Of a DNA stretch of 64,000 bases, positions 20,226 to 61,561 are shown in pieces. Source of the stretch: Amphiscolops sp. MND2022. Lineage: Eukaryota. The notes beneath the pieces were generated by a model. That model was not told the DNA's origin. It did no database searches and was given only the letters and a program-made list of their open reading frames with translations. Within the stretch, counting starts at the first letter, position 1, and the number at the start of each line of letters is the position of its first letter. The stretch is from positions 22,692,001 through 22,756,000 of the forward strand of contig OZ076415.1 in the NCBI GenBank assembly GCA_964187785.1, in the 5' to 3' direction. The position numbers were made by a program, and so were the translations under genes.

Positions 20226-20831
20226 ATGGTTTATATAGTTGGAGCTAGCTCATTACACGTAACAGTAGAATCAACTACTTACAAATTCAGAAAAACTATT
20301 CGGAACTTCATTACCGCAATACCAGGTCTCAGTTTCTGTCACAACTCGAGACTGAAAAATTTGCAGCATCTTCTATCTCAAGGAAAACTGAAATATCAAC
20401 ATAACCTGCTCCTCTGGCACGACCTGATAAATAATACTTTATCCCCACATTCAAGCAACAATCATAAACCCTGGACCCCTCAGCAACTAGTTACGGCATT
20501 AAAACAGCAAAGTCATCGAATAACTGCAGTCATTTACTGCAGAAGATTTGGGACTGCAGATATCTTTAACCAATTACTGGCTACTGATATCCTTATAATC
20601 CGGGCTGATAAACACCTTCTATCTCACAGAAAGAGGAACAATCATTGGATTAAAACGCAACTCGCAGAAGTGCATCCCTGCGTCCGCATTGAACTGAACT
20701 TGCTACACACGGTTTTACAGCGGAGCAAAAAGCTGCAGTCAATAGTTATTCAAAACCGCTCCAGAACCAGAAAACGTAAATCCAAGAAAAGATCCACTTC
20801 CGCGAGAAGGAGGAACAAAAAAGCGAATTAG
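20226..20831 (+). CDS. Intact 201-aa SGNH/GDSL esterase-like ORF (ORF0) upstream of LINE ORF1
   Basis: ATG at 20226. Motifs IVGASSL (block I Ser), PGLS, WHDLINN and EVHP resemble SGNH blocks I/II/III/V. The C-terminal tail is very basic and there are no stops. Confidence 0.6.
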   Translation: MVYIVGASSLHVTVESTTYKFRKTIRNFITAIPGLSFCHNSRLKNLQHLLSQGKLKYQHNLLLWHDLINNTLSPHSSNNHKPWTPQQLVTALKQQSHRITAVIYCRRFGTADIFNQLLATDILIIRADKHLLSHRKRNNHWIKTQLAEVHPCVRIELNLLHTVLQRSKKLQSIVIQNRSRTRKRKSKKRSTSARRRNKKAN

Positions 20832-20913
20832 GAATCTCTAACTGGGTAGCTATTTGAGCCTTTGTTGGTTTGGAGCGGCCCGGGGCGAGTAACCTGCTTG
20901 CTTTGAATCAAAA

Positions 20914-22104
20914 ATGACTGGCACACGCAGTAGAAATCAATCCACCTCGGACGAAAAATGTCCGCAGTGCAAAAGTAAGGTAGCTGAAAAATAAAAGAAA
21001 TCAATTCTTTGCAACGGTTGTTTGAATGGTGGCACGGGACATGTGGAGGAATAGAAGTGAAAGATTTGGCAATATTGGCGAAGTACTCGGCTGTGCACTG
21101 GTACTGTCCCAAATGTGAAAACGACACTTTGCAAAAACAAGGTATGACCATCATGAAGTCCTTAAAAACGTTAAATCAATGGTATAATAATGAAAGTGAA
21201 ATTCGCAAACAGGAAACTGATCTATTGATGTCAATTAAAACTGATATCGAAATCATCAAGGAAAAAAACCCCCTCAGGAAACACCTATGCAGAGAAGGCT
21301 AAAATCGCCCGAAAACCTTCGCCCTCTACGAGACAACAAATACGTCGAAACAAAGAGAAAGACTTGAGTACCATATTGATTGTCAGTGGCAATCAAAAGT
21401 ATCGAGATAGCATTGAAATTAAAAGGGCATTTTCAAAAATTTTTCCTATGAAAAAATTGATTGTAGCATTCAATACTGCTCGGGGAAACATTCACTTAGA
21501 ATTCTTGAACTCTCAAGAGGCTGACGAGGTGTTCTCCAACTGGAAAGCTGATTATCTTGGAACGAAAACCAGTATACGAAAAGCTAGCGCTAGAGGTGAG
21601 CAGAGAAACGCTGTCATTAAAGGTGTTCCGAAAGAGATAGAAAAGGTTCATATTACTGAAATTCTCCAGAAGAAGTATCCTGGGATCTATGTGAAAAGAT
21701 TCGTAAAAGCGAATGGAACAATTCTGCAGACAGTGAAACTGACCTTCCAGTCAGAGCTTCAATACAACAATGCACTATCTGAGGGACTCTTTTTGGATTC
21801 CATTTACTACCAGCCATATGCATTTGTTCAGAGAGGCATAAGAATCATTCGATATTACAACTGCCAAAAATTCGGTCACCTTAGCGGAAACTGCCACTCC
21901 AAAACAGCCTGTAAACATTGCAGTGAAGATCACAAAATTGAAGACTGTCCGAATAAAGAATTAGAATGCAAATGTATGAATTGCAAAGGGACTCACGATG
22001 CGGATTCACTTGTGTGCCCAACTTACATTAAACAAAAACAAGTGGTTTATGACGCTCGAGGGCTAACTGATGAAAATCATGCTGGATGGCATGATGGCTC
22101 CTGA
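20914..22104 (+). mobile_element. LINE ORF1: PHD finger, probable RRM region and three zinc knuckles (1 stop, 2 frameshifts)
   Basis: Reconstructed CPQC..CNGC..WWHGTC..WYCPKC; TYAEKAK; YNCQKFGHLSGNC, CKHCSEDHKIEDC, CMNCKGTHDADSLVC. Lesions are TAA at 20992, a -1 frameshift near 21015 and a +1 frameshift in the A-run near 21265. Confidence 0.85.
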
Positions 22105-25100: not shown

Positions 25101-25238
25101 AATCTCTATCACTATTTCTTCTCCTGTCCGCACTAGAACGAGATACGCCCAGACATACAGAGCCTAAATTTAATGGAAGCGACTGGTTGTCAAAAACTCC
25201 GAGATTTCATAATGAATACAAATAAACTGAACTTATAG
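22070..25238 (+). mobile_element. LINE ORF2: AP endonuclease, reverse transcriptase and C-terminal CCHC, no RNase H (I-group-like)
   Basis: APE motifs LQINICG, LNETK, GDCNARH, SVIDL; RT motifs YRPLS, DLEKAFD, GVPQGSVLSP, FADD; C-terminal CICG..H..C. There is a +1 frameshift near 22458 and a premature TAG at 25134; the reading continues to TAG at 25236-25238. The 3' end runs into the N gap. Confidence 0.95.
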
Positions 25239-25267: not shown

Positions 25268-25467
25268 NNNNNNNNNNNNNNNNNNNNNNNNNNNNNNNNN
25301 NNNNNNNNNNNNNNNNNNNNNNNNNNNNNNNNNNNNNNNNNNNNNNNNNNNNNNNNNNNNNNNNNNNNNNNNNNNNNNNNNNNNNNNNNNNNNNNNNNNN
25401 NNNNNNNNNNNNNNNNNNNNNNNNNNNNNNNNNNNNNNNNNNNNNNNNNNNNNNNNNNNNNNNNNNN
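25268..25467. other. Assembly gap (200 N)
   Basis: Run of N. Confidence 1.
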
Positions 25468-25713: not shown

Positions 25714-27868
25714 GTATAAAACGTGCCTCGGATATGTTATGTCCCCATTTCCTCTAGTGCCCCGCGGCCCCTTGAGGCCGCTTATATTCCCATCTTGCTA
25801 AGCGAGGTCGAACAGGAGCAAAGACCTAGCGAGAACGGAGATCGCGAAGCGATCGTAGTGGGAGGAATTCCGGACGTTTCGGCAAAAGACGTTTCGGCAA
25901 AAACATGGCGGCGGACGTTTCGGCAAAAAAATATGCCGAAACGTCTCAGGCTAAAAAATTTGCCGAAACGTCTCGCATGATATATGCGATGTATGCACGC
26001 TCGCCCTCACCGTCGCAAAGACCAGCTCCCACTACGATCGCTTCGCGATCTCCGTTCCCGCTAGGTCTTTGCTCCTGTTCGACCTCGCTTAGCAAGATGG
26101 GCATATAAGCGGCCCCAAGGGGCCGCGGGGCACTAGAGGAAATGGGGACATATCCGAGAGGGGAACAGGACGTTTCGGCAAAAGACGTTTCGGCAAAAAC
26201 ATGGCGGCGGACGTTTCGGCAAAAAAAATTTGCCGAAACGTCTCGAATTTTTTTTTGCCGAAACGTCTTTGCCGAAACGTCCTTTTCCCAGTGGGAGCTG
26301 GTGTTTGCGACGGCTTCGGGCAAAAAGTTCGATTTACTAAGTTCGAATTTGAAGTAGTGCAACAAGTTCGAATGGAATAGTTTCGAAACACCAAGTTCGA
26401 ATTTTCATATCGGGCATATCCGGTGTAAACTGGACATCCTTCACACAAGATCCTGAGAGCTCCACCGCCTAGGATCTAAAGGAATCTAAAAACTGAAATG
26501 TGGGGCATATCCGGTGTATGCACGCTCGCCCTCACCGTCGCAAAGACCAGCTCCCACTACGATCGCTTCGCGATCTCAGTTCCCGCTAGGTCTTTGCTCC
26601 TGTTCAACCTCGCTTACCAAGATGGGAACATAAGCGGCCTCAAGGGGCCGCGGGCACGAGAGGAAATGGGGACATATCCGAGAGGGGAACAGGACGTTTC
26701 GGCAAAAGACGTTTCGGCAAAAACATGGCGGCGGACGTTTCGGCAAAAAAAATTTGCCGAAACGTCTCGAATTTTTTTTTGCCGAAACGTCTTTGCCGAA
26801 ACGTCGTTTTCCCAGTGGGAGCTGGTGTTTGCGACGGCTTCGGGCAAAAAGTTCGATTTACTAAGTTCGAATTTGAAGTAGTGCAACAAGTTCGAATGGA
26901 ATAGTTTCGAAACACCAAGTTCGAATTTTCATATCGGGCATATCCGGTGTAAACTGGACATCCTTCACACAAGATCCTGAGAGCTCCACCGCCTAGGATC
27001 TAAAGGAATCTAAAAACTGAAATGTGGGGCATATCCGGTGTATGCACGCTCGCCCTCACCGTCGCAAAGACCAGCTCCCACTACGATCGCTTCGCGATCT
27101 CAGTTCCCGCTAGGTCTTTGCTCCTGTTCAACCTCGCTTACCAAGATGGGAACATAAGCGGCCTCAAGGGGCCGCGGGCACGAGAGGAAATGGGGACATA
27201 TCCGAGGCACATTTTATGCTTTGCATCATTCCTACATTAATGTTCTTATCGTTTTCCTTCTATTCCAGAATTCTACAAACTGGTATTCTACAAACTGGAC
27301 CTTTACCAGTTTGTAGAAAACCAAAAACAATACCAAGGTAATACGGGACGTTTCGGCATGAAAAATTTGCCGAAACGTCTCGAGATTTTTTTGCCGAAAC
27401 GTCTTCGCCGAAACGTCTTTGCCGAAACGTCCTGTTCCCACACGGATGCAGGTAATTTCGCCTTATGCCATTTCGCCTAAAAATTTAGTTGAGTCATTTC
27501 GCCTAAAAAATGGCGAAATGACCAAAGTCAATGACTCCTAAATTAGGCGAACTAAAAACAAAACTATATTTATATACTTGGTTAAATTACATACTTGGTT
27601 TCTTAACACAGAAAATCATTGAAACTGAAATTAAACATGGAAAAAATTTTCAATACGTTCCCTTTCTAATGTAAGGCAAATCCGGTGTATGCACGCTCGC
27701 CCTCACCGTCACAAAGACCAGCTCCCACTACGATCGCTTCGCGATCTCCGTTCCCGCTAGGTCTTTGCTCCTGTTCGACCTCGCTTAGCAAGATGGGAAC
27801 AAAAGCGGCCCCAAGGGGCCGCAGGGCACTAGATGAATTGGGGAAATATCAGAGGCACGTTTTATACT
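25714..27868. mobile_element. Composite foldback element with long TIRs and nested gccgaaacgt-repeat MITEs
   Basis: Left arm gtataaaacgtgcctcggatat...cgatcgtagtggga is the reverse complement of arms at ~26015-26160, 26540-26685, 27065-27210 and 27710-27868 (the last ends gaggcacgtttatac). Internal palindromic arrays of gacgtttcggc/gccgaaacgtc. Confidence 0.7.
26140..27205. repeat. Near-perfect 524-bp tandem duplication
   Basis: Identical ORF starts at 26498/27022; aatggggacatatccgag at 26140, 26664 and 27188; one visible substitution. Confidence 0.9.
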
Positions 27869-35879: not shown

Positions 35880-36118
35880 ATATTGGCACGATCTAAGAGA
35901 TCTTCATATCATTTGCTTGCCAAGATCTTGATAAGATCTTGCCATGATCTTGGCAAGCATTTCCACATGGAACGCTTGTCAAGATCTTGCCAAGATCTTG
36001 CCAAGATCTTACCAAGCGTAGCATGCATCATGTTTTTCCATGCGTCTTGGTAAGCCTACCATGCGTTTCCATGTTTTTCCAAGATCTTGGCAAGGCTACC
36101 AAGATTCGTGTCACTGGG
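35880..36118. mobile_element. caagatcttg-repeat MITE family copy
   Basis: Array of the palindromic 10-mer caagatcttg ending in ..cactggg. Relatives lie at 37840-38001, 38790-38960, 46107-46275 and 61562-61822. Confidence 0.65.
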
Positions 36119-39100
36119 ATGTCATCTGAGATAGGGTTTAAAAATGAACTCGAAACGTTTCTTCTTCCGGTTCAATATTATCAAAATTAAATTCGTTTTT
36201 GTATGTGTCATGTATCAGGTTTCCGCTTATCTCTTTCTTCGTTAGTGTTACATTCAACATACCTAGAAGTACTGGGGAGAAACGTTGAGTTCTTTCATCT
36301 TTTGTATCTGCAGCTGAGACCAAGTATGTTCGGAGTATCTTTGACGACGAAATTACTATCGAGTGATTGTCCAAACAGGTATAACTCTGGAAAGCACAGA
36401 AACCGTTTTGCTAGGGAGCATTTGAACACGAATCGGAAACTGGAGTTTTGGGAGCTGTTTGGACCTTCTATATCTTATGTCTCCATTTAAAACCACAATA
36501 TAAAAAATTAGGCAAAATACAACTGTGAAGATACGCAAGAGTCAGTATGGCGAGTCCATCCATCAGTACATGAATAATATCTAAATGCAAAATAGGAATA
36601 ACGTTTAAAGCTGCGAGAGGATCTTGGCAAGGATATCATGTCTTCGAACAGTGGGATTCAATCTCACAGCAAACAGTTTTAAGCCTTTTCAAAATCTCCA
36701 AGGTTGATACCACGAACAGAACTGTTTTGTCACAGGCGAACTCTCACTGGCTTTTCTGTTCCGAAAGAATAGGTGTTTGGAGCATCATGTTTCCATAGTT
36801 GAGTAATCAGGTTTATGAGTCCGTCAGTCCAAACACTGCTAAAGGCTCTCTGCTTGTGTCTCTCCAAAATCATTGAATTTGCGAGTGAAGACGGTAGAGT
36901 AATTTAAATTGACATGATTCAGTTACTCAAAATTTGTGCTTCTAACATTTGACATCCAGTGTAATTGTAATTTTTACCCTTTTCGATTACAATGACATTT
37001 CAAAAATCGTAGGACTTAGAAATTTTTGTCCAACATTGTAGAATATCAGAAACTGTATCAATAGACTGTTGATAAACAACATCATATCTCTGTTGCTAGT
37101 TTTAGTTTGTTTACTTACAACTATGAGTTTATACTCTAAAAGCTTACATCAGTATACTACATTTGCGATTAGAGTAAACGTTGATTCGTAACTCTTTTAC
37201 CGGCCTATCCTAGAGATATTTCATGGCGCAGTCAGCAATTTAAAACTTGCTGAAGAAAAGAAACGATACAAAACAATGGAGGACGAAGACGGCAATATAA
37301 CTGGACAGACCAGTAGCCAATCAATCCCAAACAACACAACGACGAGATCGGTAGAACATTGAAAACTTGTAAAGTAGTTTTTTTGTCTTTTGGCCACAGT
37401 GCTTGATCATTCACAGTTCAACACCATCACTGTCGTAAGATCGAGTCATTGGTAAGTCTTTCAGGACTATCAAGGTGGTTTTCTTTCATGAAGTCCTTTG
37501 CGCCGAAACTTCTGATGAAAATTAGGTTGTCAATAATATTAGTTTGTACTAAAGCTTCCTTCATATATTTGGTGAACGCCGATTTTATTCTTGAGAATTG
37601 AAGACGTTTATCTAATTTCTGAGTTCGATCTGCATCAGACATTCCACAAAAACAACATTTTGATATTTATCTCAATTACTTTTGTTATTTTTAGGTCTTA
37701 GTGCTTTTTTCCAGGTTCCTAAACAACAATATATCATTGGTGATAGCGGAGATTTCTCCGATGAAAGCTCCAAGCTTGTCATGATGTAAAACGTTTTCCA
37801 ATATTAGTTCAGTAGGACGTCTTCAGACAAATCTTGGAAACATCCTAGAAATAATCCCAATCTAGCAAGAATCTTGCCAGTTGACACAATTCTTGCAAGA
37901 ATCTTGCAAGAAACCTGCCAGGTTAATGCATTGACTTGCAAGACCTTGCAAGAATGCATGTCCCAATTCTCTTGCAAGATATGTATTTCTCTCAACCAGG
38001 GAATAAACTGTTCACTAAGCAGCTAATCGCTTCGTTGTCAAACCCAGTGAAAAAAGTTTCAAAAATTCTATTAAACAATCAAAAAGTGAATTTATTTCAA
38101 GTTTTCTTTTAAAATCTCAACTTTTATATATTTTTAATATATAAAAGATCCACACTACCTGAAAGCAACGAACCCATATTTTTTGCACTGAATGAACGAT
38201 CCTCTTTTCTTAGTATAACTTGGTATATGACAAAATTCATAAGCAACGAGGCGAGAACTACTATTTCATTGATATAAGTGACAAAAAAACTTTTGTTCTA
38301 AAATGATGAATTATCATTGAAGAATGTTCAAAATTGTATTTTTTGTCGAAACCATGTAATACCCTCCCAATCTTATGTCGAATGCCTCGCAAGTAGGGCT
38401 TCATGAGCAACTCAACAACTCCACTCTCTGTTTTACCATCAAATTTTGCAGTTCAATAATCTTCCTTATAAACTGTGAAAACTTTTCTTCGGTCTTTGTA
38501 TCAACGTTCTCGAAGATGTCACGTCATTTAGCACTTCATGAACTCACTTCACTGTTGTTTGTGCGACTTTTAACACTTAAGTTTTTTTATGTGATAAGAT
38601 TTTTCGGAATTGTCTTTTATTGTCAAAGTTTCTGTACTTCTATCAAAATGTTTTTGTTCCAACTTTCCCTGACTATAGTATACTCAACAATATATATAGT
38701 ACTCTAAAAAATGCTGTAAAAATCTTTCTATATGAAAGTTCCAAATTCTTTTATTTTAATTTACTTTTCAAATTCAAGCATTTTCTTCCAAGTTACTCTC
38801 AAGGTTCAGGCATTTTCTTCCAAGTTACTTCCAAGACCAGACATTTTCTTGCAAGATATTGCAAGACCAGACATTTTCTTGCAAGATCTTCCAAGATACC
38901 TGCAAGAATAATGCATTGTCTTCGAAGATCTTGGAAGTGAAATCTGACAGATTCTTGCAGAAAATGTATGAACGTTCGACTAGGGTACTCAACAATTCAA
39001 TAAGACAACCGAAAGACATCTATCGGTCAGGTACAGTTTTGATGCAAGGGAGTATCAAACATCAAAAACGCATCCTACTTCAAGGTCGGGATTGAATTCC

Positions 39101-39870: not shown

Positions 39871-42801
39871 ATGACATCATTCATCTCTTCGTGTGTTTTC
39901 TGGGTTCTGCTTGCTTCTCAGGTCGTGGATGTTCGCTCGGCTCTGTTTAATCGCAATCGAACTGACAGCCAACCAGAAAAGAGTCTCGTGAGTTCTTGAA
40001 AAAGCTAGCATTCACAAAAAATAGTTTTCTGTTGAGTCCGCTATGGAAACTAGATTCCAAATTTTGCACAAGGAAATCAAGATGTAGTTGGTATTTATGT
40101 ACGCCAAGAAATTTGAATAACTGAAATTATCTGATCATTTGAAAGCTAGAATAGGAAAAAAATTGTGTTTTCTAAATCTCAATTTATCTGCTGACTGCAG
40201 GCAGCAGAAAAATTGAGATTCAGAAGAATAAAATTTTTCCTGTCTTTTTCAATTGGATTTTTTGGTGTTTCCAGTTAGGGAAAAGGCGGTTTTCGAGTCT
40301 TACGGGACGTAAAAATTATTGTATCATCAGCATATTAGAAAGAAGGGTAAGATCAATTGAAAAGAGTCTTGAGAAAAACCTCTGATAAACTGATTGAAAT
40401 TGTATTTCCTCAATCAAACAACAAAAAGCAAACGTTTTTCGTAGAAAATGGAGCAACGGAAATAAATAATACCAAAAGTTAATCAAAGTTAATCATAAAA
40501 GAAACAATTAGTTCAGAACTTCAAGAACCCACTGTTGAAAACATTAGCTGGAGCTTCTTGATGGGGGTGCCACTGTGATTCAGTCGGATAAGGAGGAAGA
40601 GGAGTTGGAAAGTGAACCTCCCACAATCTACAATGGTAGAACTTCTCGAAGAGGCCAATTCCCTTTCGTGGTATCTCTCTTTGACTTTGTAGACAGTAAT
40701 AGCGCTTCATTCTGTGGGGCCAGCATCTACGATCGCAAACATGTGATCACAGGCATGTCGAAAATTCGCATCTTTACGTTGCAGTCAAGAGAGCCTATAT
40801 GTAACGTTTTTAATTGGAGCTTTTTAATGTCTCAGATTAAAATACTCACTTTTATCTTCTTTTCTCTCGAGGTAACATTTTTTTCTTCCATCTCGAATCC
40901 TCGGATCCCACACTCGGACGATGGCAACGAGTTTTCAACGACTTGACTACTTTTCAGTTTTTTGTAGCCTTCAACATCCCAGAAACCTCCTTATATGTGG
41001 TTGTCTTGTCTTGTTGAATTGGGTTCCAAACCGGTCGTTCGACAAAAAATTGAAAAGGTTGGTTGGTTTTAGGAATCAAGACAGGGAAAATGTTATCGTC
41101 AAAAACTTTTATTACTATTTTGAAATATACTTTTTCTTGGGTGAGAACCTTCTCTGGAAAGAACTGAGTAAAAATAAAAGATAGGTGGCGCACCATTCCA
41201 TACAATGACCATTTATTTTCATTGTGATATTTGTTGTTGATTCATGAATGCTTCAAAATTTTTCAACGTGCCTCTTGATCATCATAGCCGCTCATTGCGT
41301 TAAAAGAAGGAGACATCACATTAAACTGAGATTTGGCGATTGGGATCGGACGGAAAAGGAATCGGGAGAAGAAGAAAGGTGGGTCAAAAGCGTAACCATT
41401 CATCCCAACTACACGACCGGTAGTGGCAAAAGAAACTTGACATTCGACATTGCCATTTTGGAGCTGAAAGATCCAATTGATTTTTCCAAGTATATTCAAC
41501 CTCTTTGCTTCCCTACAAGGAGGCCCAAACCGAGGGAAAGGACGTTTGCGATTGGTTGGGGCGAGACTGAGCATACTGGAAACAATGCTTTTTTGCGATA
41601 CGCCATGGTACCCGTTATTGACCGCGAAAAATGCAACAAGTTTTGGGGTGGAGGAGTTTATAAAGGACAACTATGCGCGGGTTTCAAAGATGGGCATTCC
41701 AATATCTGCTTTGGTGACTCAGGGGGCCCGTTGGTACGACCAACGGATAATGGCTTTCAGTTGGTTGGAATAGCGTCGTGGATCAAGGCGTGTACCGAGG
41801 GGAGTAGCAACAAGAAGCTGGGAACGGCATAAGTAGGCGCACCGCTTAATGCTCAAAAAGAGCAAAATAAGCCAAAAGGGAGGTACTGTTTAGGCTTTAA
41901 AAGGCTTTTTTGCTTTCATTCTCAAAATAAATCAACCCTTTTCGCTTTTTTCTCACCAGGCGCATAAAAACGAGAATATTTCTGTGAAATAAAAGTTTCT
42001 CGAAAAAGTCACACAGTGCCGAAAAATCCAAAGGTGGGCATTTTTGTTTTTCAATGAAACTTGCCAACTTCACAACTTTAAATTGCCAACAAACTTTGGG
42101 TGAAAATTTCAAACAGCTTGAGAAAAGCTGAATACAACTTTTCACATTAAAGTTTCAGAAGGAGTTTTAGTGAACCTTAAAAATGTTATTGGCAACTTTA
42201 AAGAACATGCAAAAAGTTCAAGCAATTTGAACGATGGTATCTTTTTGATATCTTATTGTATTACTTTGAACCAACGTGTCTTGAAGTTCTTGAACCATTA
42301 TCTTGTTTTCTATAATTTCTAATTGCATGTGAAAAGTACAACCTCCATATTCATGTTAGCTTTTCAAAAACTTCGTCTTAAACTCATAATCACCGTTTTT
42401 GCCTCATTATACCGTTCTCGATGTCGCTTAAAAAGTTCGAAAAACTATGGCTTGTTCGTAAATCTTCATCGTTTGTTAACTGTTGAATGATCTGTAGCTT
42501 ATATATATTGCAGCTTTTGTGATTCAAAAATTTCGAATCTTAGGATATGAAATCAACCAAAGGTGATAAAAAACGATCAAATAATTTGAATTTGTTTCCT
42601 ATAAGTGAATTGTTGCGTCTTGAATGCTTCATTTGCTAAACCCCTGTATGTTATGAACTGAAGGGCCCTGGTGCGTACACTGATGCGTTTTACTATCGCA
42701 AATGGATCAAGAAAACAGCCGGAAAACCGGACTACCACAACTCAACAGTTAAATGTGCTAAGAAGTTCCAAGGTTTGGACGGGTGGGAAGACGAGTTCTG
42801 A
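39871..42801 (+). CDS. Secreted S1 (chymotrypsin-family) serine protease, ~323 aa (exons 39871-39987, 40548-40752, 41288-41799, 42664-42801)
   Basis: Signal peptide MTSFISSCVFWVLLASQVVDVRS; mature start IYNG; FCGAS; triad motifs TAAHC, FDIAIL and GDSGGP; PGAYT..WI. The exon 3 end is inferred from a non-canonical donor. Confidence 0.9.
41809..42050 (+). mobile_element. HINE-like element in protease intron 3
   Basis: aacaagaagctgggaacggcataagtaggcgcacc..gctcaaaaag parallels the 4057 start; contains aaagtcacacagtgccgaaaaa. Confidence 0.55.
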
Positions 42802-43480
42802 ACACGAACCAAGAAGATGGGCAGATTCGGCACCAACTGATGACAACTCCTAAGTCGAGTAGCAGAATCCCAAAAATGAACAATAATGGAAAAAATCTAA
42901 TTCCAGCTTCCAATGAAAATTTAATGATTAATTCTTGGCTTAATATTTATGATGAAACGTTGGATTTGATTTTTCTGAATATAATATAATCTTTTTCAAA
43001 AGATCCAGTTTTTAAATGAGTGATTCAGAATTATTTTATATTCAATGCACTTGATGTTATGATCAACTTTCTGGAAACGTAACTATTTGAAAAACTATTC
43101 ATAAATTTCAACCAAAAAATAACAAGACCTCAGTTATGCTGTCTTGAAAGTCTTCTTTACAAACTAAAGATGAAATTTTTGTTTCGCAACTACATAGTAT
43201 AGTGTTTTTCAGCTACTTAAAATGTTTCTTGATCCATCGAAATTGGTCCAATCCTAAAACTGATAACCGTGAATTATCCGGCAGAGTTTTATTCACATAC
43301 TCTCTGGGGAAAACAGGCGGAAAATCGACTGATTACTTGCCTGAAATTTCCGTAAAATTTGTTGAATATCAGTAGATTTAAATTGATGAATTTGAATTGG
43401 GAATTGCATTAATTTTGTGCGGAGCAGCACATAGTTTATAAATCTTCGCTCTATTAGCAGATAGAGCGTGAACAAAGTCT

Positions 43481-46400
43481 TCAGCGGCAAGAGCATTCAG
43501 TGATATTCCAGTGAACTATTTCTAGCGTGTAGAACAACCATTTTTTCACAGCTCCTTTTTTGTTCTTGCGTTTGTACAGGATAGTGCCATTTCCATATTG
43601 GGAAGGCACACACTCACTGCCGTCGTAATGGTGCAATGACACATTGGGACACCAGCCTTGACACTTCATGGTGGTGAAATACTCGGGAATGATGATGGAA
43701 ACGTCGTCTTCATCTTGCGATATATCCGCTATCATATAATTTGTGGGCAGTTTCAGAATTGCACCTGTAAAAGGCAATAACAGATCATGAAGTTTACTTA
43801 GGGTTAAATTTCTCGAATGCACCACAAAAGGGCCCGTTTTGAGCATAACAAAAGGGCCTACTTTTGAAGTGCAATAACATGGTCGATTCTAACAAAGTTG
43901 CCGATTATGAGAACGTAACACAAAAGCCGATTCAGAAGCGTACTAGAATGACCATTTAGAAGGGGCAGATTTTAACGAAATAATTCTCATTTTTATTGGC
44001 TGCATGACTCGGCCTTGCGCCTCTCCGGTCGGCCTTTGTCAAAACAAGTTGCCAGTCAAAAACTGACGCGTCGCTCCGCTCCTGCATCTAGGGCACTACA
44101 GGCGTGTCTCCTAGCTGATCAGGTCCTTTTGTTACGCTTCAGAAATTGGCCATTTTCTTACCCTTCAGAACAGGAAGTTTTGTCACAGTTGTCACACAAT
44201 CGGCCGTTATGTTACGTTTATTAAAAGGGCGTTTTTTTATCCTAATAATCGGCCATTTTGTGACGTCCCCAATTTCTGCCAAGTATTTCGGAAATCACTA
44301 CGTTTTTATTAACCCATATGGTATTCTGTTCAAACTATTCAAATAAATTACAATTGTGCTGTAGTCGTGAAACCGTTCGAAAAGACTTTGCGCTTTTGGC
44401 GTTTTTTGGCACTGTGCAATTTCTCCGAAACATTTTTCTTCATCAATTTCAGAATTCTTCGATAATTTCAATTTATCGCATCTTCGAAGAAGCGATAAAT
44501 TGAAATTATCGAAAAATTCTGAAATTGATGGTGAAAAATGTTACGAAGAAATTGCACAGTTCCAAAAACCCAAAAATGGTTTGGATGCCAAAAAATTTTC
44601 GATGCCGAAAACTTTGCAAAAAAGGCGAGTCAATAGTTTGCAAAGAAAAACTTTAGTCCTCAACAGATAAAACTGGCAGACGTTTGCTTGAGATTCGCGC
44701 ATAGCCAACGGCGGCTTGGACAAACTTCAACAATGTTGGAAAGTGGACCATTCGCATACATTCTGTTGCCTTACGAAAAAAACGAGTCACTGTAAAAAGT
44801 GGACACATTTCCTCGTCGACAAAATGCGTCGACTAAATTTGGAAATTTTTCGGTTTAACTTCATTACGATACATATCCCCGCAAGCAACTTCCCAGATCT
44901 CGCGACTTGCATTAATAACCAATCACAGTGAGTTATTATGATATATAGTTTTACACTTTTTCTCTTATTACACCAACATGGCCAGAAGTTCTGTTAAATG
45001 GTATTTATAATCACTAGAAAAACATTTTTTTTTGTTTTTGAACAATTGATGCTGTTTTCTTATGAAATGGCGGAAATTACCATTTCCGAGGAATGCTTGT
45101 TGAACGTTATATTTTTACAAATATACGAGTCTATCGCATCTGGCAAAGAAAAGGTTATTTGTCAGAAATGCAAAGCGATAGCTTCTTCATCGCTTCCTGC
45201 TTTCAATTGAGAACTATTTTTCTGAAAAGTGTTCAAATACTCATTTGAATTAATTGAATGTTATCCAGTTTTATTCAAATATCACGAATTTCATTATGGA
45301 AAGTGAAACATTTCCTCTCTCGTCCATTCTACAAGTATCATACTGCATGATGCCTGCCATCTACTTTTGCGGCTACTTTTGTTGAAAAAATGCCGGAAAT
45401 ATATATTTTTCTGATTACCACTAAATTTATCTGCTAGCATCATGAGTCTTTTCGCTTCTCTACAAGAATTTTTGATGTATAGAAAAAAAATTTAGTGTCA
45501 CATCTTGAGTATTTCGACAACTAAACCTGACGAAAAATGCCACAAATATACAGTTTTGAACAAATTTTTAGTTTTTTTCTCAAGTTTTCAAAACATATTA
45601 GCATGTTATTTGCGTAACTAATGTTTTGAAAGAAAATGTAAATATTTCAATGCCGGGTTGTATGTCACTTGAGAAATGGAATTTACTGTGGCAAATGTTA
45701 CACCTACAATTGAAACTAATCTAGTCGAGAAAAAGTAAGGACACAACTGAGCGTAATCTGCCATGTTATCCAAAAAAAACAAATTTAGTTTAACTGATTT
45801 ACATTTCGACAACTGTATTTAACGGAATACCGATTGTCGCCACACTATCATAAATTAGGTATAAATTAGGACGGTGAATTAAGTTCATACGAATTAGGTA
45901 AATAATTACTGTTTCCTGTATTTACTTTTGTTCCTCATACCACAGAAAAAGAACAAAAAAATCATTATTTGGAATAACTTTTGTAAATGATCCCTAAAAT
46001 GACATGTCAATGACAAAAAAAACCGAAAGCCATTATTCGGAATGAACAGCATGTAGTTCTCTACATTCTAACATTCATTTCTGTCATCAACAAAAACGAA
46101 TCATCACCCAGATTTGGAAAAAAGCTGTTCTTGCGAAGATGTTGCAAGAATATTGCAAAATCTTGAAAGAAAATGCATTTCCCTGTCAGATTGTCATGAG
46201 GAATAAATTTACATGGAAGATCTTTCAGTGAATGCATTAAATGCAAAAATAATGCGAGATCCTTGCAAACCTTTTGATCCCTCATCCCCGCAACTATTTT
46301 TTGAGAAATTAGTGAAAATATTTCTCTGAGAATAAAAAATATGAACCAAGCCAGAAACATACAATTCAAATTTAACTTCAAGGTGATAGTTTCAAACCCA

Positions 46401-47010
46401 GATATGAACTTTGTTCACGCTATTTTTCCCATGAAAGTCACGCATTCTTGGTGAGGAAATCAACCGCGTGAATTTTAGAGTCACAAAAAACATAATCACA
46501 GTCCAAGTGTGTGAAAAATGTTTCGTTCAAAGAACTATTCCAATAGAAGTTAACATCCTGTTATGGAAAAAGATTTCACTTTTAATCAGGCATGTTTCAA
46601 ACAAATTTGAAACTTGTGAACAAAAAAGAGACAAAAGAGAGACAAAGAGAAGGTTCACTAACCGCAGCAAGACGTATGCTCTCCACACGGAAGAACTTCA
46701 ACGAAGCGTTTGTGTTGTCTGACTATGTCCTCGAAATTATTGTCCCATTTTTCGGTCTCCGCTTTAGTCATACGCAGTTTGTTATAATCTTCAAATGCAA
46801 CCTTTTCCGTAGAGCCCGTCCAAATTTGGTTTTTGAGGTACGAATAGTGTGCTTCATCATAATCTGTTGAGCTTTTAGCATTGTTGCACCATACTTGAAG
46901 GCATATTGCGACGACTGAAACACAATATTAGTTTAAGCAGCTATCTTCTCATTACAAATAGGCATATTCGAGCGAAGTTTTCTGTCCATTTTTTAAAATT
47001 TACATCGCAT
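43481..47010 (-). CDS. Divergent TGF-beta/activin-like cystine-knot precursor, 180 aa (exons 47010-47004, 46914-46663, 43764-43481)
   Basis: Canonical GT-AG, phase-consistent joins give MRFVAICLQVWCNNAKS...RQHKR|FVEVLPCGEHTSCCGAILKLP...IIIPEYFTTMKCQGWCP...ECVPSQYGNGTILY...ITECSCR*. It has the C..CC, CxGxC, CVP and CxC TGF-beta pattern. Exon 1 (7 nt, caaacATG context) is the least certain. Confidence 0.85.
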
Positions 47011-50573: not shown

Positions 50574-53500
50574 GTGAAGTGCCCGCAATTTTTGTTGAGA
50601 AAAGATAGAGACCTCATGTAAGTTGCAAAAGACTCCTAAAAGCTTGGGTTAATGATGTATATAAGCTCCCACGCTGTACATATCAAATTGAAGGAGTACG
50701 AACCCTCCATTGTAGAAAGTTTTGCAATTGTTGATACCTGATTTTTTACAAATTTACTTTAAGGCGTTTTCACCGTGAAGGAGTCAGATGGAAAGATCAT
50801 GATAGAGAACGTTTTTGTAGCCCTTTACATTTCTTTCAGCAGGTAGACTTAGTTTTGTCCGAATCGAAACACTTAGTTTTTGGCCTCAGAATGTGTAAGT
50901 TGAAAATCGACTCGATGGGATGTAAAACAAAATAGCCTTTTGGGTCATTGTAAATTGTTGGGATTTTTTTCTTTTAGCTGAAGTTTTCTGAAGAGCGTTG
51001 CCAGGAGTCGTGTGAGAAAAAACACCCTGACAAAAAGTGCAAATATCAATCATAGAGCAAAAGACTAAGTCGTGTTTGCGAAAGTGGGAACAATTGAGTC
51101 AGTGATACCTCCTCTTGAATCTGATTGAAAACGAAATAAAACCACTAGTCTTTATTGACAGAAAGGTAGAACCAGGTCCAACTAGTGATGGGAAAATGTG
51201 CTTCTGATGAACTTTTGGTACTGAAGTAGGAAAATCTGTAGTACTCAACATTAGTGAGGTACCAAAAAAGGAAGCATGACGAAATACCAACATTTAAATG
51301 ACTAAACTGCCGAAAAAGTAACTTAGGCCGAAGGGTACTCCACTGCGAAAGAGCAGAAAGTGAGTTGAGTTCTAGAGAACAGTTTGCTGCTTTGGGTCCA
51401 ATTACATCCCGGATCAGGCACCGGATTATCGAATTTGAAAATTTACTTCGATTGGCCGTTCAGCCCGTGCCTTCAGCCTGACAACCTCAGGTCGTTGCTA
51501 CTCCGCCATACCCTAGTACGAATTTCGACCCGGCAACAGGGTTGCCAGCTGGTCTATCGTATCTCACACGTAATACAGGCTAAGTGGCCTTAGAATACAC
51601 GGAACAGGCTAAGTGGCCTTATAATACACGGAACAGGTTAAGTGGCCTTCGAATATCCGGAAATCATTTTCACTCCCAGACCGATAGAGAAGAAATGCGG
51701 CGAGATGCTTTATCAGATATCTTGGAGATATCACACCGGATCCTCACGGATAGCCAAAATCAACACCTTGCTGAAACCCTTGTTCATTGATTGTTTTTGT
51801 TATTTGTCTTCTAATATTAGTCGTAATGTTCACCGTATTTATCGATGTTATCTCAGAGTACATTCTTTTATTCGTGGTTGTGAATTTGTGTTTGTCTTTT
51901 AATCGTCCTATATTATTATTGTGTTATAATTGATGTTCAAACTGCTTCTTTCATTCTTGAAAGGACACACTAAACAGCTTAAGATTAGCGAGTCAACCCC
52001 CGGAAAAGTGTCATATTTCAAAAAGAGCTAAAGAGCGTGAATTCCTTGTCACACTCACGCCACCGTCTTCGATTGTATTGTTTCTTCTTTGCCTTCGAAG
52101 TTATTAAAATTTTATGTAGATACTAAGCCAGTTCTTGTCTCGTGCATGGTACCTACGGGTTTAATTGAGTTGTAGTGGAGCTATTGGAGTGGAACTGATA
52201 GTTAAAGCTACCGAAGACCAAAAATCTTACACGTTTTTTAAAAGTTTTCCGTGAATGCCAGCGAGAACTTTGATTTTTCCCTCTTGAACTGAGCCAAGAA
52301 GTTTAAGATAATTTTCCGAGAATGTTGGCCATGCATTTTCATAGTACATTACCGTATTGAAAAATATCTTCTGTCAAAGGTACTAACTGAATAACATGGC
52401 TTTCGGCTTGAAGTCTCCAAATTAAAGTGAAAGGACGATTTGACGTAAAGGCAAGCTGTACATAAAAATATTCAAGGCAGGGGCTGAGATTAAACTGAAT
52501 AACAACGGGTTCACGTCAATTCAAAAAGAAGAGATTTGGTAAGAGAAGCTAATGAAGTTGTTTGCATACTTATTGCCATTTGTTCCATTTTTATTGTTTC
52601 GCCTTTTGGAGAATGAACAGCGGAGAACTGATCAGTTCATACTGCAGTGTGGGCAATTCCACATATAATATTCAACGAACCTTGAATAGGGGCAAGACTT
52701 AATTGCTATCAATCAATCCACTGATAGTGGTTATTGTCATGATATTTAATAACTGCTATCATTTTGATTACAATTTTCTCATGTTCAGCACAATTCCAAG
52801 CCTTAAGCAGCCGTTAAAACCAATCTCGTTGATGAGCAAATATATTCATACATTTGCTTCGTAAACGTTAAATTACAATTATTGATGTAAAAGTCCGAGA
52901 TCCTACTTCGATTGACACCATCTATATTCAACAAACCATTTCATGTTGTCAGAGTTTTTTTTTAAAAAAGGTGTAACCTTTAGTTTCTAGAAATAAGTGC
53001 TGATGAATAAAAAGCGCGTATGTAGTAACAACCCGTACTGGCCAATCACCAGTGACCACTCCGGTAGTAAAATCACGTGATTTAGACGTGCTTGACAACG
53101 TGAAGTTCGCTTGTCATCATTTTTCAGTCACATGCTTTTAGAGATTTCTCTGGTTTTGAGCATTTAGTCCTTTTTTCAGAGGGTTACCTCAAGGAACCCC
53201 AAGTTTAAAAAATCCTAACTATCCAGCGGATTCAAGAAACGGGACGCCAGGAACCGTCTTTAATGCTACCCGGGTCCTTGAGGTAACCCTCTGAAAAAAG
53301 GACTAAATGCTCAAAACCAGAGAAATCTCTAAAAGCATGTGACTGTCTTTCTGTTTTTTACAAAATCTTGTTTCTCTAGAAGCATGTGACTGTCTTTCTG
53401 TTTTTTACAAAATCTTGTTTCTCTAGAAGCATGTGACTGTCTTTCTGTTTTTTACAAAATCTTGTTTCACAATCAATTTTTGGGGAATCTTTAAAATATC

Positions 53501-55573
53501 AGCAATGTTGTGAGTTCTTTTGAACTGTTGGCTTCGAAGTTTGAATCTCAGGAACTGTAGTACAGTTCCTGAGATTCAAACTTCGAAGCCAACAGTTCAA
53601 AAGAACTCACAACATTGCTGATATTTTAAAGATTCCCCAAAAATTGATTGTGAAACAAGATTTTGTAAAAAACAGAAAGACAAGTACGTCAAGATGGATG
53701 AACTGAAGCAACGAGGAAAAGATGTCCTACGAAAATAAACACTGATTGATGGCTATGTAGCGAATGTGTTGAAAAGATTAACTCGATACTGATACCTTTG
53801 ACTGTTTTGAAAGTTTGGTCTCTTTGTGTGAGCAGTGTCAAGGTGATAACTTATACAGTGTTTGAGCGCCCCTTCTGGGGATGTCCTTTCTTAGGTTAAG
53901 AAACATTTATATTCGGATTTTTTTCTTTCAGAAAAGCCAAGGTTTGAGTTTTGCGACAAGACCTAATGGTACAAGTGGAAACTGGCGAGTTTTTCTAGAT
54001 AGCCAGGTTCGTGTCCTACAATACATGTGCCCTGTACCAATCAGCAGCAGTCTCTTCAATGACGGTTCGGCATCTGACTTATTCTTCTTTCTCTCTTTGA
54101 GGCAACGAGGACGGTTTGCAAAAACTTCTTCATGGCTAGGCGGCTAAGTGACGTTTCCCGTACTGACACTCCAGTGGACTTAAGTCCTTGCCAGGACAAC
54201 TCAAGCATTCCAAGTCCTTGACAGGATAACTTAAGGATTCCAAGGGCTCCCAATGATTTCCCCAGTTTTCGAAAAATTCGCAAGTTCTTACCAGTCCTGG
54301 TGCAGTCCTTAGCAGTCCTTGAGAAATTTCGATGAAAAATTTGAAGTTGCATACAGGGCGCGGCCATTTTGAATTTGAGTAGGAAAAAACTAGTTGCTTG
54401 TATTTCCTATCACTTCCAAGTGTATTTTGTATCAATTAGCCCCTTGAACATTGGATTATGGTCAGAATACTTGTTCCGGTACTAGACCCATAGTCGAGAC
54501 TCTGTCTGGGCTCAATAGTTCCGGGTATAATGATAAAAAAGGTGTAGGGGGTTAAAAAAAAGGAGAGGGGGAAAATGATTTAAAATTCATTTTGGATTTT
54601 ATTCCCTTAAGAACTTGTTACAGTCCTGGAGTTTTAGTTATTATATGCTTTAGATCTTATTCCAGTCAGGGGAGCGGGAATAACGTCTAAAAGCAAAAAG
54701 GAATAACGTCTAAAGCCAAGTCATGCTCATTCTCTATGTAAAAACAATTGATTTTTAGATCTTCTTCCCTTTAGATCTTATTCCTTTTCAATCTTTATCC
54801 TTGTAGATCTTATTCAATTTAGATCTCATTCTAGTCTCGAAGTATTAGATAGGGACACAGTAATGAGATCCGACTCCTAAGATCTAAAGGAATAAGATCT
54901 AAAAATGTGACATGCTCAATGAACTACCGCCGCCTTAGATCTAATTTGAGCTAACACGGTGCAACCTAAGCGATATCATGGACTGAGCGATAATATACTT
55001 CCAGCATGGAGTTTGTGCTCATTCATTTGATGTATTACTGTGAATGGGGCCTTTTTATGAACCTGCTCGTTGGTAGGCGTGCCAGTGTCGACTGTTTCTC
55101 AGTTGGCCAGACAAAACTATAAAAACGAAAATTTTCGAGGTCGTTTAATGATTATTTGACAAGAGACTATTTTTCCTGATTTTTGTAAGGTAACATTCTG
55201 AAAAATTTCTTCCTGCACCCAATAACAGTTATTTTACATAAATATAGCACCTATTCGGCCGTTACACGCCGTGAATCGGGTTTGGATTTTTCCGTGTTCC
55301 AGTCCTTGGCAGCGTATCTCCACGATTCCCAATGACTGGCAAGGACTGGTCCAGGACTTGTAAGGCTAAAAGTGGCACATGTAGGGACTAGTTCAGAACT
55401 TGACAAGCCCTCACCAGTACTTGGGAATCTTTGGCAGTCCTGGAATTCAAATTTTTGTCAGTAAGGTTTTGTAGATGAAGAGTGAAGTTGATTCTGCGAA
55501 GAATTTGATTTCGCATTTTTTCCGGAGAATCGAAAAGGCTGATAATTGGCGGTTTGTGGGAGACGATTCCTAG
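50574..55573 (+). CDS. Possible small multi-exon gene (candidate exons 50574-50617, 51327-51359, 53932-54006, 55475-55573)
   Basis: Candidate exons have good AG/GT flanks. The last three join in phase 0 (AEGYSTAKEQK KSQG..WRVFLDSQ MKSEVDSAKNLISHFFRRIEKADNWRFVGDDS*). The first exon is out of phase with them, and no family was recognised. Confidence 0.25.
51575..51649. repeat. 29-bp minisatellite (~2.6 copies)
   Basis: aatacacggaacagg(c/t)taagtggcctt repeated. Confidence 0.85.
53125..53345. repeat. Perfect 71-bp inverted repeat with 79-bp spacer
   Basis: 53125-53195 is the reverse complement of 53275-53345. Confidence 0.9.
53334..53468. repeat. 47-bp tandem repeat (~2.9 copies)
   Basis: The unit agcatgtgactgtctttctg...cttgtttctctaga starts at 53334, 53381 and 53428. 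Confidence 0.9.
53438..53682. repeat. Perfect palindrome, 122-bp arms with a 1-nt centre at 53560
   Basis: ...ggaactgta g tacagttcc...; the arms are complementary out to 53438/53682. Confidence 0.9.
54600..54965. mobile_element. agatct-repeat MITE family copy
   Basis: Repeated tagatctt/aagatcta units with a tgcaaccta end. Relatives lie at 25520-25710, 28370-28470 and 63700-63830. Confidence 0.5.
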
Positions 55574-57860: not shown

Positions 57861-60783
57861 TGTTAAGATCTCGTTGTTGCTTTAAAAACAGTGTTAGTAG
57901 CAAGTAATCTCTTTTCAACTAGCTCGTATCAAAGTATATCCAATATATGATATGTAATGTAGCAACATAAGTAAGACAGAAATCAATTGGATTTTGTTTG
58001 TAAATAAAGTCAAGTAACTCTCTGTCTAAAGTATTTTTCCATTTCAACGGTTGACTATCCGTATTTCACGGTTGGTTTGTTCTTCATTTTGTGGTTGGTC
58101 CAGTTAGCTGGTTTGGTTTGGGCTGGCTGTAAAATACAATCATTATTTGTTTGTTTTATTGTTATTAGTATAAGATGGAAAACCACATATTTTTTCGGTC
58201 TGTTGGTCAAAGGGTATTTTTTTATTTTTTCACCGTTTGGTGGTATTCATCAGACAATAAGCTCGTTCTTATACCTGTTTCTGGGGTCAGTTTTTTTCCT
58301 TTGGCAACAATTATAGCTCGTCGTTTAAGCTGATGTGGACGGGCTTCCCCTCGCTGGTGTTGTAGCATTGAAAGTCGTCTTCAGATACCATGCTTAGTTC
58401 GAGGTCCATTGGTTTTCCTGCCAACTTGTCGCGACCTGTGAATCGACCTCTTTTTATTCTTGGTTGGTCTTTTCTCTTGAGCCAGTTGGAGCTGCTCTCC
58501 GTGTTTTCTGGTCGCGGTGGCTTTTTTCTGCGGTATCCACAAGTTGTCTCAGTTGTTTTTGAACAGGATGGCTTGTCGGTCGTAATTGTCAGTCTGGTGT
58601 TTATTCTCTTCGTCGGTGTAGCTGTTGCCTGAAAGGGTATCGGGTTAGATATTAGTTTCCTGTGTAGAATTTTGTTCTTATCGGTAGTTACTGTGTGTCG
58701 CGTTCCCGAGACCGCGATCTGCGGTTTTTTATTGAATTTGTTTTCAAGCGAGCTTTTTGTTTGGACTTTTTCGAAGAAAGTAAACGGGTATTCAAAGTGT
58801 TTACCGTTACTTACCGCATTTGACGGTTTTTTGTTTCGGGTGAGGGTCATTCCTCTCCGATATTTCGGGTCGTTTGTTTTTTTCTTTAACATCACCAAGT
58901 GGTGTGTATTTTCGCCAACTGAGTTGTGGGTGACGTAGACTGATAATTCCTTTGAATCAGCTGAAATAGCATTTTTTAGATTAGAGATTTTGTCCCGGGT
59001 TCTCGTCCGCAGTGCAATTGGAAAGGGTTTTTCTTTATTTCTGAAAGTATAGTAAAACGGAGGACATATAGTGCTTTGTTCAAGCTTTCCCGTAAACTTT
59101 GGATTTCTTCTATGTTTGTCTTTATCAGGTTCATCAGTGATTGGATGGTTCTCTCGACCCATCTTGTGCCAGTATGTAAATTTGGCCTACCGTATTTACG
59201 GATTTCATCGTAATCTTACCAATTGCCTTTGTATTTCTTTGAAATGAAAGCACTGCCGTTTTCGATTTGAATATTTTCGGTACGCCGTATACGTTTATGT
59301 ATTCCCGTAGAAATGTTATAACTGTATCGTGGTTGGTATTTTTGCAGATCTTTGCTACCGGCCAACGGCTGCTTTTATCTAGGGCTACTAATATATCAGG
59401 GGAGGAGATTAGGTTGTTTACTGTTTAAATTTCCCGTGAAATCGATTTGGATGTCTTCTGCTGGGTTTTTTGGCGGTTCAATTTTTGATTTTTCAGTATT
59501 TGGTAGTTGGGTTTTCAAGTTCTTACCGGCATTTATGCAAGCGGAGCAGGTCTTTGCTTTCTTTTCTATATCGGCCCGCATGTAATTGTCATTGTTGTCC
59601 GGTATTATTTTGCTGATCTGTGTGATTTGAAGTATTCCTTCGGGTTCACTTTCTTCGTTGTCTTCTTCAGAGGTCATATCTAACAGATAGAAAATTCTTT
59701 TTGTTTTGTTTGGTTTCGTGCGACATACCAGTGCAAAGTGCCCTATTGTCCGGCAGTTGTTGCATTTTATTGTTCTAACCGGGCAGCTACATTGGGGTGT
59801 CCAATTTTGTTGTCCGCAGAATCCACAGTTGTTTTTCTATTGTTTTTGTTGATCTCGATATTGTTATGTTTGGATTTTATGGATGGGTTCTTGTTTTATC
59901 TCTTTGTCTTTTGCTAGCGCGGGTGGTATGTCAGATTGTTTATGGTGGCGGTCGTAACTGTCTTGTGTAGAAAGTTCTACGGTGGTTTTTAAATTGAGGG
60001 TTTTTCACGAATGAGTTTTTCCCGAAATTTCTTGTCAGTTATGCTCGTGATGAATTTCGATTTGAGTAACCCTTCTTATTTGATATCTTTGAATACGCAG
60101 TTCTTCTCCAGTGGTATTAGCTTTTTCCAGTGTTCTTCGGGTTTCTCGTTTTCTTCTTGCTAAGCCGAGAAGAAATCTCCACGGCTGTGGTATGTATTTC
60201 TCTTTGGCATATTTTATTCTCAGAATAGTTGTATCAGTTTATCGTTTTTGATTGTGTCAGGATCCGTTTTGAATTCACTTTTTGTGATAATCTCAATTGC
60301 CGACGGTCCGGCGACCCCAAATGAAGTTTTGTCTGATATCTGGTTCTTTTGTATCCCATGGGTCACCGGTAGGTGCTGTGTCATCCGTTAGTATTTGTTT
60401 AATATCAATATTGTGGATTCTTATTATGTAGTGCCGAAATCTTTCGGTCCTTTCTTTGGGTGTATATAATTTGTTCCCGTCGAGTCCGGTGTCTTCTAGG
60501 TATGGTAGTTGTATCTTTGTTGCCACGGCCATTGTATAATAGTCAAAGGGTGATAAATATTTTTGTACCGTGAGAGGAAAATTTGGTAAAAATCTTGCTT
60601 ACTGCGCCATGTTAAGATCTCGTTGTTACTTTATAATCAGTGTTAGTAGCAAGTAATCTTTTTTCAACTAGCTCGTATCAAAGTATATCCAATATATGAT
60701 ATTTAATGTAGCAACATAAATAAGACAGAAATCAATTACAGTTTGCTTGTAAATATAGTTAAGCAACTCTCTGTCTAAGGTAG
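57861..60783 (-). mobile_element. Internally deleted Ty3/Gypsy LTR retrotransposon (gag plus integrase, no protease/RT/RNase H)
   Basis: LTR segments 57861-58033 and 60610-60782 share ~173 bp (about 14 mismatches by hand count) and end in ..TTAACA on the minus strand. PBS TGGCGCAGT at 60609-60601. Gag start 60532, knuckles CGFCG and CNNCRTIGHFALVC; integrase CSAC, IQIDFTG, YGVP and a long C-terminal ORF at 59162-58311. Confidence 0.9.
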
Positions 60784-61561
60784 TTAAGTCTATGTGAAAT
60801 GGTATTTTGACCTCTACATTCCACAATTTTTTTTTGAGAAATTGAAAACACCTAGAGCAAAAATCGGACCGTCGATTGTGTCGATGAAACATTTTTAATT
60901 CTATTGATTGACATTTATTTCACGTTGTGATATGTATAGTGTACCGTTGCGTAATTTAGTATTTGTTATTTGTTTATTTATTAGATAGTATGGCAAGAAT
61001 TGCTGATGCGTTTTGTTGTCATTAATTCGTGCCGACGTTCAATGTAAAACGTTCAAAGGTGACTTGATTTCATTTTCCACTGATATATCTATGTACAGAA
61101 ACGATCGCTTCCGTAACAATCAATAATTAATTGATATAAAAATTATGGTAACATTGTCCTTCATGGTAACATAGTCAATGTGAAGCATTTCGTATATAAT
61201 GACCTTTCAGTTGAGGAATATTCAATGCAAGAGATCACGGAAAACTTGGTTTGGTGAAATAACGTCCAGAAAAGTGACGTCAATGAATGTTTGTTGCACC
61301 AGTTGCTCCGGAAGTTATACCTTGCGGGAGTTTCTGCCAAATTTTCACTGGAGCGTTGCGGCTGTGCTGACCAGAAGAAACAAGGGGGTCATTCCGGTTT
61401 CAAGAGAAAACATTTATTTTCAACGAAAAAAAAACAATTTCGAACTTTTGGCTATTTTCCTATATTTTTTTCAATGATTTCATCGTTATTAGAAGAGTTA
61501 AGATGAGAACGCAATTCAACTTCCACTTGTTCAGACTCCTAGACTCCTCTGATGAAGGCTC

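Follow-up and report, generated by a model that had tools for sequence, protein, structure and literature searches.

A 64,000-nucleotide stretch of contig OZ076415.1 from Amphiscolops sp. MND2022, referred to in its full length as the window, carries on its minus strand (46989 to 43481) a predicted gene for a cysteine-rich precursor protein. We put at about even the chances of the reading we prefer: that the gene is lineage-restricted and encodes a small, secreted protein of the cystine-knot type, very distantly related to the TGF-beta (transforming growth factor beta) ligands and probably monomeric, which may work as a modulator or antagonist. As far as sequence comparison goes, the protein and its relatives form a remote TGF-beta-like cystine-knot family, not a demonstrated member of the superfamily. 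On the same evidence, the shortening of the heel (wrist) helix segment and the loss of the interchain cysteine are conserved traits of this family and not a quirk of one sequence.

Gene model, relatives and predicted precursor

The window is AT-rich eukaryotic DNA (36-40% G+C) and matches a 687-kb contig in the ENA metagenome assembly ERZ25074608. The gene was modelled with three minus-strand exons at 46989-46956, 46914-46663 and 43764-43481. The last of these comprises 93 codons and a stop codon (43481-43483), and its acceptor, ttttacag/GT at 43764/43765, is contained in a minus-strand open reading frame (ORF) at 43481-43846. It encodes finger 1, a C-x-G-x-C ring motif, a short replacement for the heel, finger 2 and a terminal C-x-C-x, and it is the part of the gene for which homologues and a match to the Pfam family TGF_beta were detected.

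HMMER was run exhaustively against 1.84 billion representative proteins, standing for about 15 billion proteins, and beyond the window's own ORF it returned a single relative (P0002, E = 2e-10, about 31-32% identity). P0032 came from a word-index search of a 5.8-billion-cluster collection with a profile of two sequences, and P0033 from a cluster look-up. All three are on separate contigs of a second assembly (ERZ26859043), at similar coverage, and because the blocks they have in common span merely 1.6-6 kb at about 88% DNA identity, we consider them to be paralogues. The family returned thus has four members, all of them unnamed ORFs in two metagenome assemblies. Neither the 1.84-billion-representative search nor the 5.8-billion-cluster search gave a named protein as a relative, and no further relatives came from two JGI metagenome scans or one IMG/VR viral contig scan. 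A viral origin was rejected, given that the viral scan contained no relatives.

Between the window protein and its relative, 29 of 97 columns are kept, including five cysteines, the ring tryptophan, two sequons and the terminal C-x-C-x. The five cysteines of the last exon are invariant in the relatives, a decayed copy excepted, and the acceptor of the relatives' last exon shares both its codon position and its phase (phase 1) with that of the window. The two intact paralogues differ by four synonymous and no non-synonymous codons in the exon, and their flanks are about 93-95% identical. Judged by this conservation, the last exon is a real coding exon.

The third copy (L003 10001-10387, on ERZ26859043 ctg80495) has lost one ring cysteine and differs from its paralogue at 13 codons non-synonymously and at five synonymously, and for these reasons it is probably decaying. 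Its duplicated block extends about 1.65 kb around the last exon, and it may be a partial duplicate.

The five cysteines of the last exon are an odd number, and therefore an upstream cysteine-bearing exon must exist. We searched both strands of the window for frames open over at least 20 codons whose C-x(3-9)-CC end falls exactly at a phase-1 GT. There were three such sites, only one of which, at 46662, has a good donor. This site ends exon 2 (46663..46914), whose acceptor is tttcag/TC and whose donor, G/GTTAGT, is in phase 1. Exon 2 encodes a hydrophobic signal core (to about 46877), a pro-region (46706-46876) and the first 14 residues of the mature part. The latter include C-x5-CC at the very end of the exon, which is the N-terminal C..CC pair that an original prediction, made from the window's letters, had pointed out. 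Exon 2 lacks an ATG ahead of its hydrophobic start, and the model therefore includes an exon 1. This first exon (46956..46989, 34 coding nucleotides) has an ATG at 46989 in a context rated good (aaaaATGG), a second in-frame ATG at 46965 and the donor T/GTAATG, and it would supply the charged start of the signal-like peptide. Exons 1 and 2 are predictions from splice logic.

Intron 1 (46915..46955, 41 nt) reads GTAATG...CTAAT...TTTCAG, with CTAAT as a branch-like site. Intron 2 (43765..46662, 2898 nt) is in phase 1 on both sides, the codon that it splits encodes Gly, and its position and phase are identical to those in the relatives. A polyadenylation-like AATAAA lies 187 nt past the stop codon (43288..43293). 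No tandem paralogues of the gene were found in the window, and scans of it for Rfam families and tRNAs gave no matches. Intron 2 also holds a hairpin-forming inverted repeat without spacer (44403-44568; 83-nt arms, 92% complementary) that resembles a miniature inverted-repeat transposable element. A second hairpin of this type, with 122-nt arms that are 100% complementary, is located at 53438-53682.

When joined, the exons give an in-frame coding sequence of 570 nt, but the product is not the 180 amino acids (aa) named in the original prediction: translation yields 189 aa from the first ATG and 181 aa from the second. In this joined model we find the proposed layout of a signal-like start, a pro-region (57 aa, where about 55 had been given), a Lys-Arg (KR) site and a mature domain of 108 aa with eight cysteines. 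The precursor has a charged N-terminus, an 11-residue hydrophobic core, an acidic pro-piece ending in Q-H-K-R and the 108-aa C-terminal part. The KR (46706-46711) is six residues ahead of the first cysteine and is a plain dibasic site and not a furin RXXR, because Arg is missing at both P4 and P6; in the predicted exon model, the sole RxxR of the precursor sits in the signal peptide. Exon 2 has no TGFb_propeptide match in Pfam and no long prodomain was seen in it, which agrees with the claim that a full prodomain is absent. The part after the KR has three N-x-S/T sequons and an isoelectric point of 6.06, and so is not basic overall.

The knot cysteines in the 189-aa model are 94 or 95, 130, 134, 147, 186 and 188, and C-x-G-x-C together with C-x-C would form an eight-membered ring. 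As eight is an even number, no cysteine is left free: three disulfides would form the knot and an auxiliary one the N-terminal pair. The ring motif C-Q-G-W-C (residues 130-134, 43649..43663) has C, G, W and C invariant in the family, except for the ring cysteine lost from the decayed copy. In alignment with BMP9, it is followed by a 12-residue link (43610..43648) where canonical ligands have the pre-helix loop and the heel helix. The link leads to one knot cysteine in S-E-C-V-P, without the paired interchain cysteine. The missing interchain cysteine had been noticed in the original prediction, and the single cysteine is kept across the family. The 11-residue spacer also reported there holds when counted after the Pro, with 12 residues from the ring cysteine to the next one. 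The chain ends in C-S-C-R (43484..43495) followed at once by the stop codon, and the relatives end in C-G-C-V and a stop.

The tip of finger 2 carries a basic patch (43541..43573) in which 7 of 11 residues are K or R. The stretch KRKNKK described earlier is present, but it is not clearly an insertion, as it aligns without gaps in HMMER to the finger-2 tip of a Nodal/BMP2 chimera of solved structure. The heparan binding proposed in the original prediction would depend on this patch, for which the relative has neutral or acidic residues. If real, heparan binding would thus be a trait of this species and not of the family.

Resemblance to TGF-beta ligands and competing explanations

We scanned last-exon fragments of three distinct domains against Pfam, in which the gathering cut-off of TGF_beta (PF00019) is 27 bits. 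TGF_beta is the top match of the last exon in the window, over residues 21-44 (18.2 bits, E = 0.0043), and the sole match of the relative (23.6 bits, E = 9.1e-5), in which it extends over profile positions 6-95 of 104 and covers 90 positions with 71 residues. It is also the sole family common to all three domains. A search of PDB sequences with the two-protein profile gave 13 matches at E <= 10, nine of which are TGF-beta-family ligands (the Nodal/BMP2 chimera, AMH, several forms of BMP9/GDF2, BMP3 and BMP10). In the BMP9 alignment, the stretch ahead of the ring pairs with its equivalent and C-V-P-S pairs with the paired-cysteine V-P-T, and BMP9 carries about 18 extra residues between these two segments. 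The likeness to TGF-beta ligands claimed in the original prediction is therefore borne out in three of three domains and in 9 of 13 PDB matches, but the family cut-off is not reached.

The features by which the protein departs from canonical ligands recur in its relatives. Where canonical ligands have about 30 residues, heel helix included, the window protein has 12 and its relatives have 14, and the single cysteine occurs at all four family loci. Loss of the interchain cysteine does not exclude membership, because some accepted members, such as Lefty, also lack it. Every copy has a single residue beyond its last cysteine, as is usual in TGF-beta/GDNF-type ligands but not in DAN, CTCK, PDGF or glycoprotein hormones.

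The precursor would be minimal, with a signal peptide, a pro-region of about 57 aa and a KR of the prohormone-convertase type. Its mature domain would keep the six knot cysteines, the extra N-terminal disulfide pair, both fingers and the C-terminus typical of the family, and would have lost the interchain cysteine and nearly all of the heel-helix segment. Canonical ligands build the type I receptor site from one chain's heel helix and the second chain's fingers, and type II receptors and many partners dock on the fingers. With neither a heel helix nor an interchain cysteine, a covalent dimer and a normal type I site should therefore be impossible. The finger surfaces would remain for docking of a type II receptor or another partner, and a monomeric or weakly self-associating ligand could occupy one such receptor or partner without building the full signalling complex. 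Secretion, KR cleavage, the monomeric state and the antagonist role are what we infer from this arrangement, and the labels "non-latent" and "monomeric antagonist" in the original prediction are deductions of the same kind. By analogy with known ligands, the likeliest role is that of a monomeric, finger-only ligand acting as a modulator or antagonist, though even this proposal is tentative and on balance doubtful. We regard as unlikely its more specific form, a natural "mini-monomer" family that, independently of Lefty, would have lost its heel, its paired cysteine and nearly all of its prodomain and would serve as decoys on a type II receptor or a finger-binding partner.

Several results weigh against the TGF-beta-like monomer. 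The TGF_beta scores, from 18.2 to 23.6 bits, are all under the 27-bit cut-off. The matches to PDB sequences, single-sequence searches included, have E values of 0.03-0.4, and the best of the two-protein profile search (E = 0.04) is not significant. AlphaFold2 models of the last-exon domain, built from shallow alignments of two or three sequences, reached predicted local distance difference test (pLDDT) values of 32.5 and 44.2. Foldseek searches with these low-confidence models gave BMP9 as the best match at E = 1.0, in a weak list where TGF-beta ligands stand among VEGF-D, PRDC, sclerostin, gremlin, PDGF-B and Spaetzle. Given scores below the cut-off and unusable structure models, membership can be argued at the level of remote homology only. 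With regard to the gene model, the very short intron 1 is its weakest point. A tblastn search with the window's exon 2 found no counterpart in the second organism, and pattern scans of first 10 and then 18.8 kb upstream of the relative gave no convincing cysteine-bearing frames on a phase-1 donor. Finally, ligands without the interchain cysteine (GDF9, BMP15 and GDF3) can dimerise non-covalently, and for this reason the monomeric state is not certain. A 128-aa ORF 14 kb upstream in the second organism has the length expected of a tandem copy, yet is unrelated.

The protein could instead be a hormone or growth factor of another or a new cystine-knot family (PTTH/Trunk, bursicon, glycoprotein-hormone-like or DAN/CTCK), resembling TGF_beta by the shared knot motif alone and activating its own receptor. 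We rate this as fairly unlikely. It is nonetheless a serious rival, because a KR site and a short pro-piece resemble the precursors of neuroendocrine knot hormones, and the whole layout, including a knot domain of about 108 aa, is of that type. The sub-threshold TGF_beta scores also come largely from the ring-cysteine region (residues 21-44 in the window), and the Foldseek list is a mixture of knot proteins. Against these points, Pfam reported no other knot family (DAN, glycoprotein hormone, Cys_knot, PDGF/VEGF, NGF/Spaetzle, sclerostin or noggin) at E <= 10 in the three scanned domains, and in the relative the TGF_beta match goes beyond the ring, over 90 of 104 profile positions. The chain end one residue after the last cysteine in all copies argues in the same direction, as does the ring-cysteine spacing of PTTH-type proteins, which is wider.

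The remaining alternatives concern the gene itself. If the last exon were the 3' exon of a conventional TGF-beta gene, exons 1 and 2 would be spurious, the real prodomain and an RXXR site would lie elsewhere, and the protein would be short in the heel without being "minimised." Exons 1 and 2 are unsupported by the relatives, intron 1 is very short, and the AT-rich window abounds in frames that stay open for about 85 codons. Moreover, the upstream exon of the second organism is either more than 18.8 kb away or unrecognisable, so long introns do occur in the family. We still find this quite unlikely, as the five cysteines of the last exon need at least one upstream cysteine and exon 2 provides C-x5-CC exactly on a strong phase-1 donor, one of three such sites in 128 kb and the only one with a good donor, together with a KR ahead of the cysteines and a hydrophobic, signal-like opening. 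Inspection of the ORFs of at least 60 aa at 47-64 kb revealed nothing prodomain-like, and three minus-strand ORFs of this region matched no Pfam family. It appears very unlikely that the locus has no product, whether as a chance ORF or as a gene copy that is decaying or non-functional. Copies of this family do decay, as seen from the ring cysteine and the 13 non-synonymous versus five synonymous differences of the third copy, but the copy in the window has an intact frame, eight cysteines, good splice sites and an AATAAA. In addition, cysteines, sequons and intron phase are kept across proteins that are 31% identical, and the two intact paralogues have only synonymous differences (four versus none).

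Neighbouring gene and repeats in the window

A gene for a trypsin-like serine protease is located at 40575-42756 on the plus strand, with three exons at about 40620-40751, 41278-41799 and 42649-42756 (Pfam Trypsin, E = 3.7e-40). It is convergent with the knot gene, and about 700 bp separate the end of its last matched exon from the knot-gene stop codon. An intronless paralogue (45% identical) is encoded on another contig of the same assembly, and the best named matches, from horseshoe crab, termite and rotifers, are only about 34% identical, a level that suggests an invertebrate from a poorly sampled lineage. For the gland or toxin-like protein suggested in the original prediction, this adjoining gene is the only pointer. 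The adjacency carries no weight, because the loci of the relatives lack a trypsin-like neighbour.

Elsewhere the window consists mainly of repeats and the remains of retroelements. A retrotransposon without long terminal repeats (LTRs), of the long interspersed nuclear element type, occupies about 20064-25136 on the plus strand, beside a run of N at 25268-25467. An ORF with Exo_endo_phos is separate from one with an endonuclease-reverse-transcriptase and RVT_1 region, and because endonuclease and reverse transcriptase are in different ORFs, the coding region of this element is interrupted at least once. Just past the assembly gap, the region 25735-27854 contains direct repeats of about 524 bp and inverted copies of a 104-130-nt unit, with similar ORFs on both strands, as in a satellite-like or composite repeat. 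A pair of direct repeats at 57861-60785, each 176 nt long, 2749 bp apart and 91% identical, surrounds minus-strand ORFs, one of 283 aa and rich in lysine and threonine, and another with Cys-x2-Cys like the zinc finger of retroelement integrases. None of these ORFs had a Pfam match, and the AT skew is strong (-0.37) at 58-60 kb. The region is possibly a small or truncated LTR element.

Short tandem arrays of CTTGCAAGAT/CTTGCCAAGAT-like words occur at 35916-36016, 37859-37955, 38767-38896 and 54182-54244. Translations just upstream of the relatives' exon (L002 9400-10000) are similarly repetitive. The repetitive look of these translations hints that the two source organisms are related.

Comparison with known ligands

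In a brief literature search we found no published description of a natural heel-less TGF-beta-type ligand. If our reading is true, the TGF-beta fold has been pared down in nature to a monomer of about 12 kDa with a minimal pro-piece, and a poorly sampled animal group gains an unannotated family in its signalling repertoire. It would bear on how much prodomain is needed for folding of the knot and on how ligand-type antagonists arise. On the mini-monomer reading, nature would have reached the same solution as the engineers of a TGF-beta antagonist. If it is not true, the protein is one more orphan cysteine-rich secreted protein.

With TGF-beta ligands in general the window protein shares the ring cysteines in C-x-G-x-C and C-x-C, a hydrophobic-Pro-x-x-Tyr just ahead of the ring, the C-V/R-P-S/T that opens finger 2 and a chain that ends with the last cysteine and one residue. 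The extra N-terminal C...CC pair is that of the nine-cysteine subgroup. Unlike those ligands, the family scores below the Pfam cut-off, has a heel segment of 12-14 residues instead of about 30 and has no interchain cysteine. The pro-region of the window protein is about 57 aa where theirs are 200-300 aa, its processing site is KR and not RXXR, and its finger 1 is about 5-6 residues longer.

Invertebrate neurohormone precursors of the PTTH/Trunk type follow the plan predicted here, with a knot domain of about 110 aa placed behind a signal peptide, a short pro-piece and a dibasic site. They differ in ring spacing and in the C-terminal tail, and the searches made returned no PTTH/Trunk-type protein as a match.

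Like the action proposed here, that of Lefty, Panda and inhibin alpha is to inhibit and not to activate. Lefty has no dimerisation cysteine and may work as a monomer (PMC340941), and Panda, described as related to Lefty and Inhibins, antagonises a type II receptor (PMC11239237). Unlike the window protein, these members have full-length prodomains, and none of them was returned as a sequence match by the searches made.

A further parallel is man-made. TGF-beta2 from which residues 52-71 (the heel helix) have been removed and that carries C77S is a folded monomer and a competitive inhibitor, able to bind the type II receptor but not to recruit type I (bioRxiv 10.64898/2026.03.23.713733). This engineered mini-monomer, mmTGF-beta2-7M (PDB 5TX4), resembles the window protein in size, at about 10 kDa, and in that the heel helix has become a short loop and the interchain cysteine has been removed, with the knot, the auxiliary N-terminal disulfide and the fingers kept. 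It differs in its origin from TGF-beta2 and in receptor-binding residues tuned for the type II receptor, and beyond the family level the two show no detectable sequence similarity. Without a prodomain, mmTGF-beta2-7M folds poorly in cells, whereas the window protein is predicted to have a short pro-piece.

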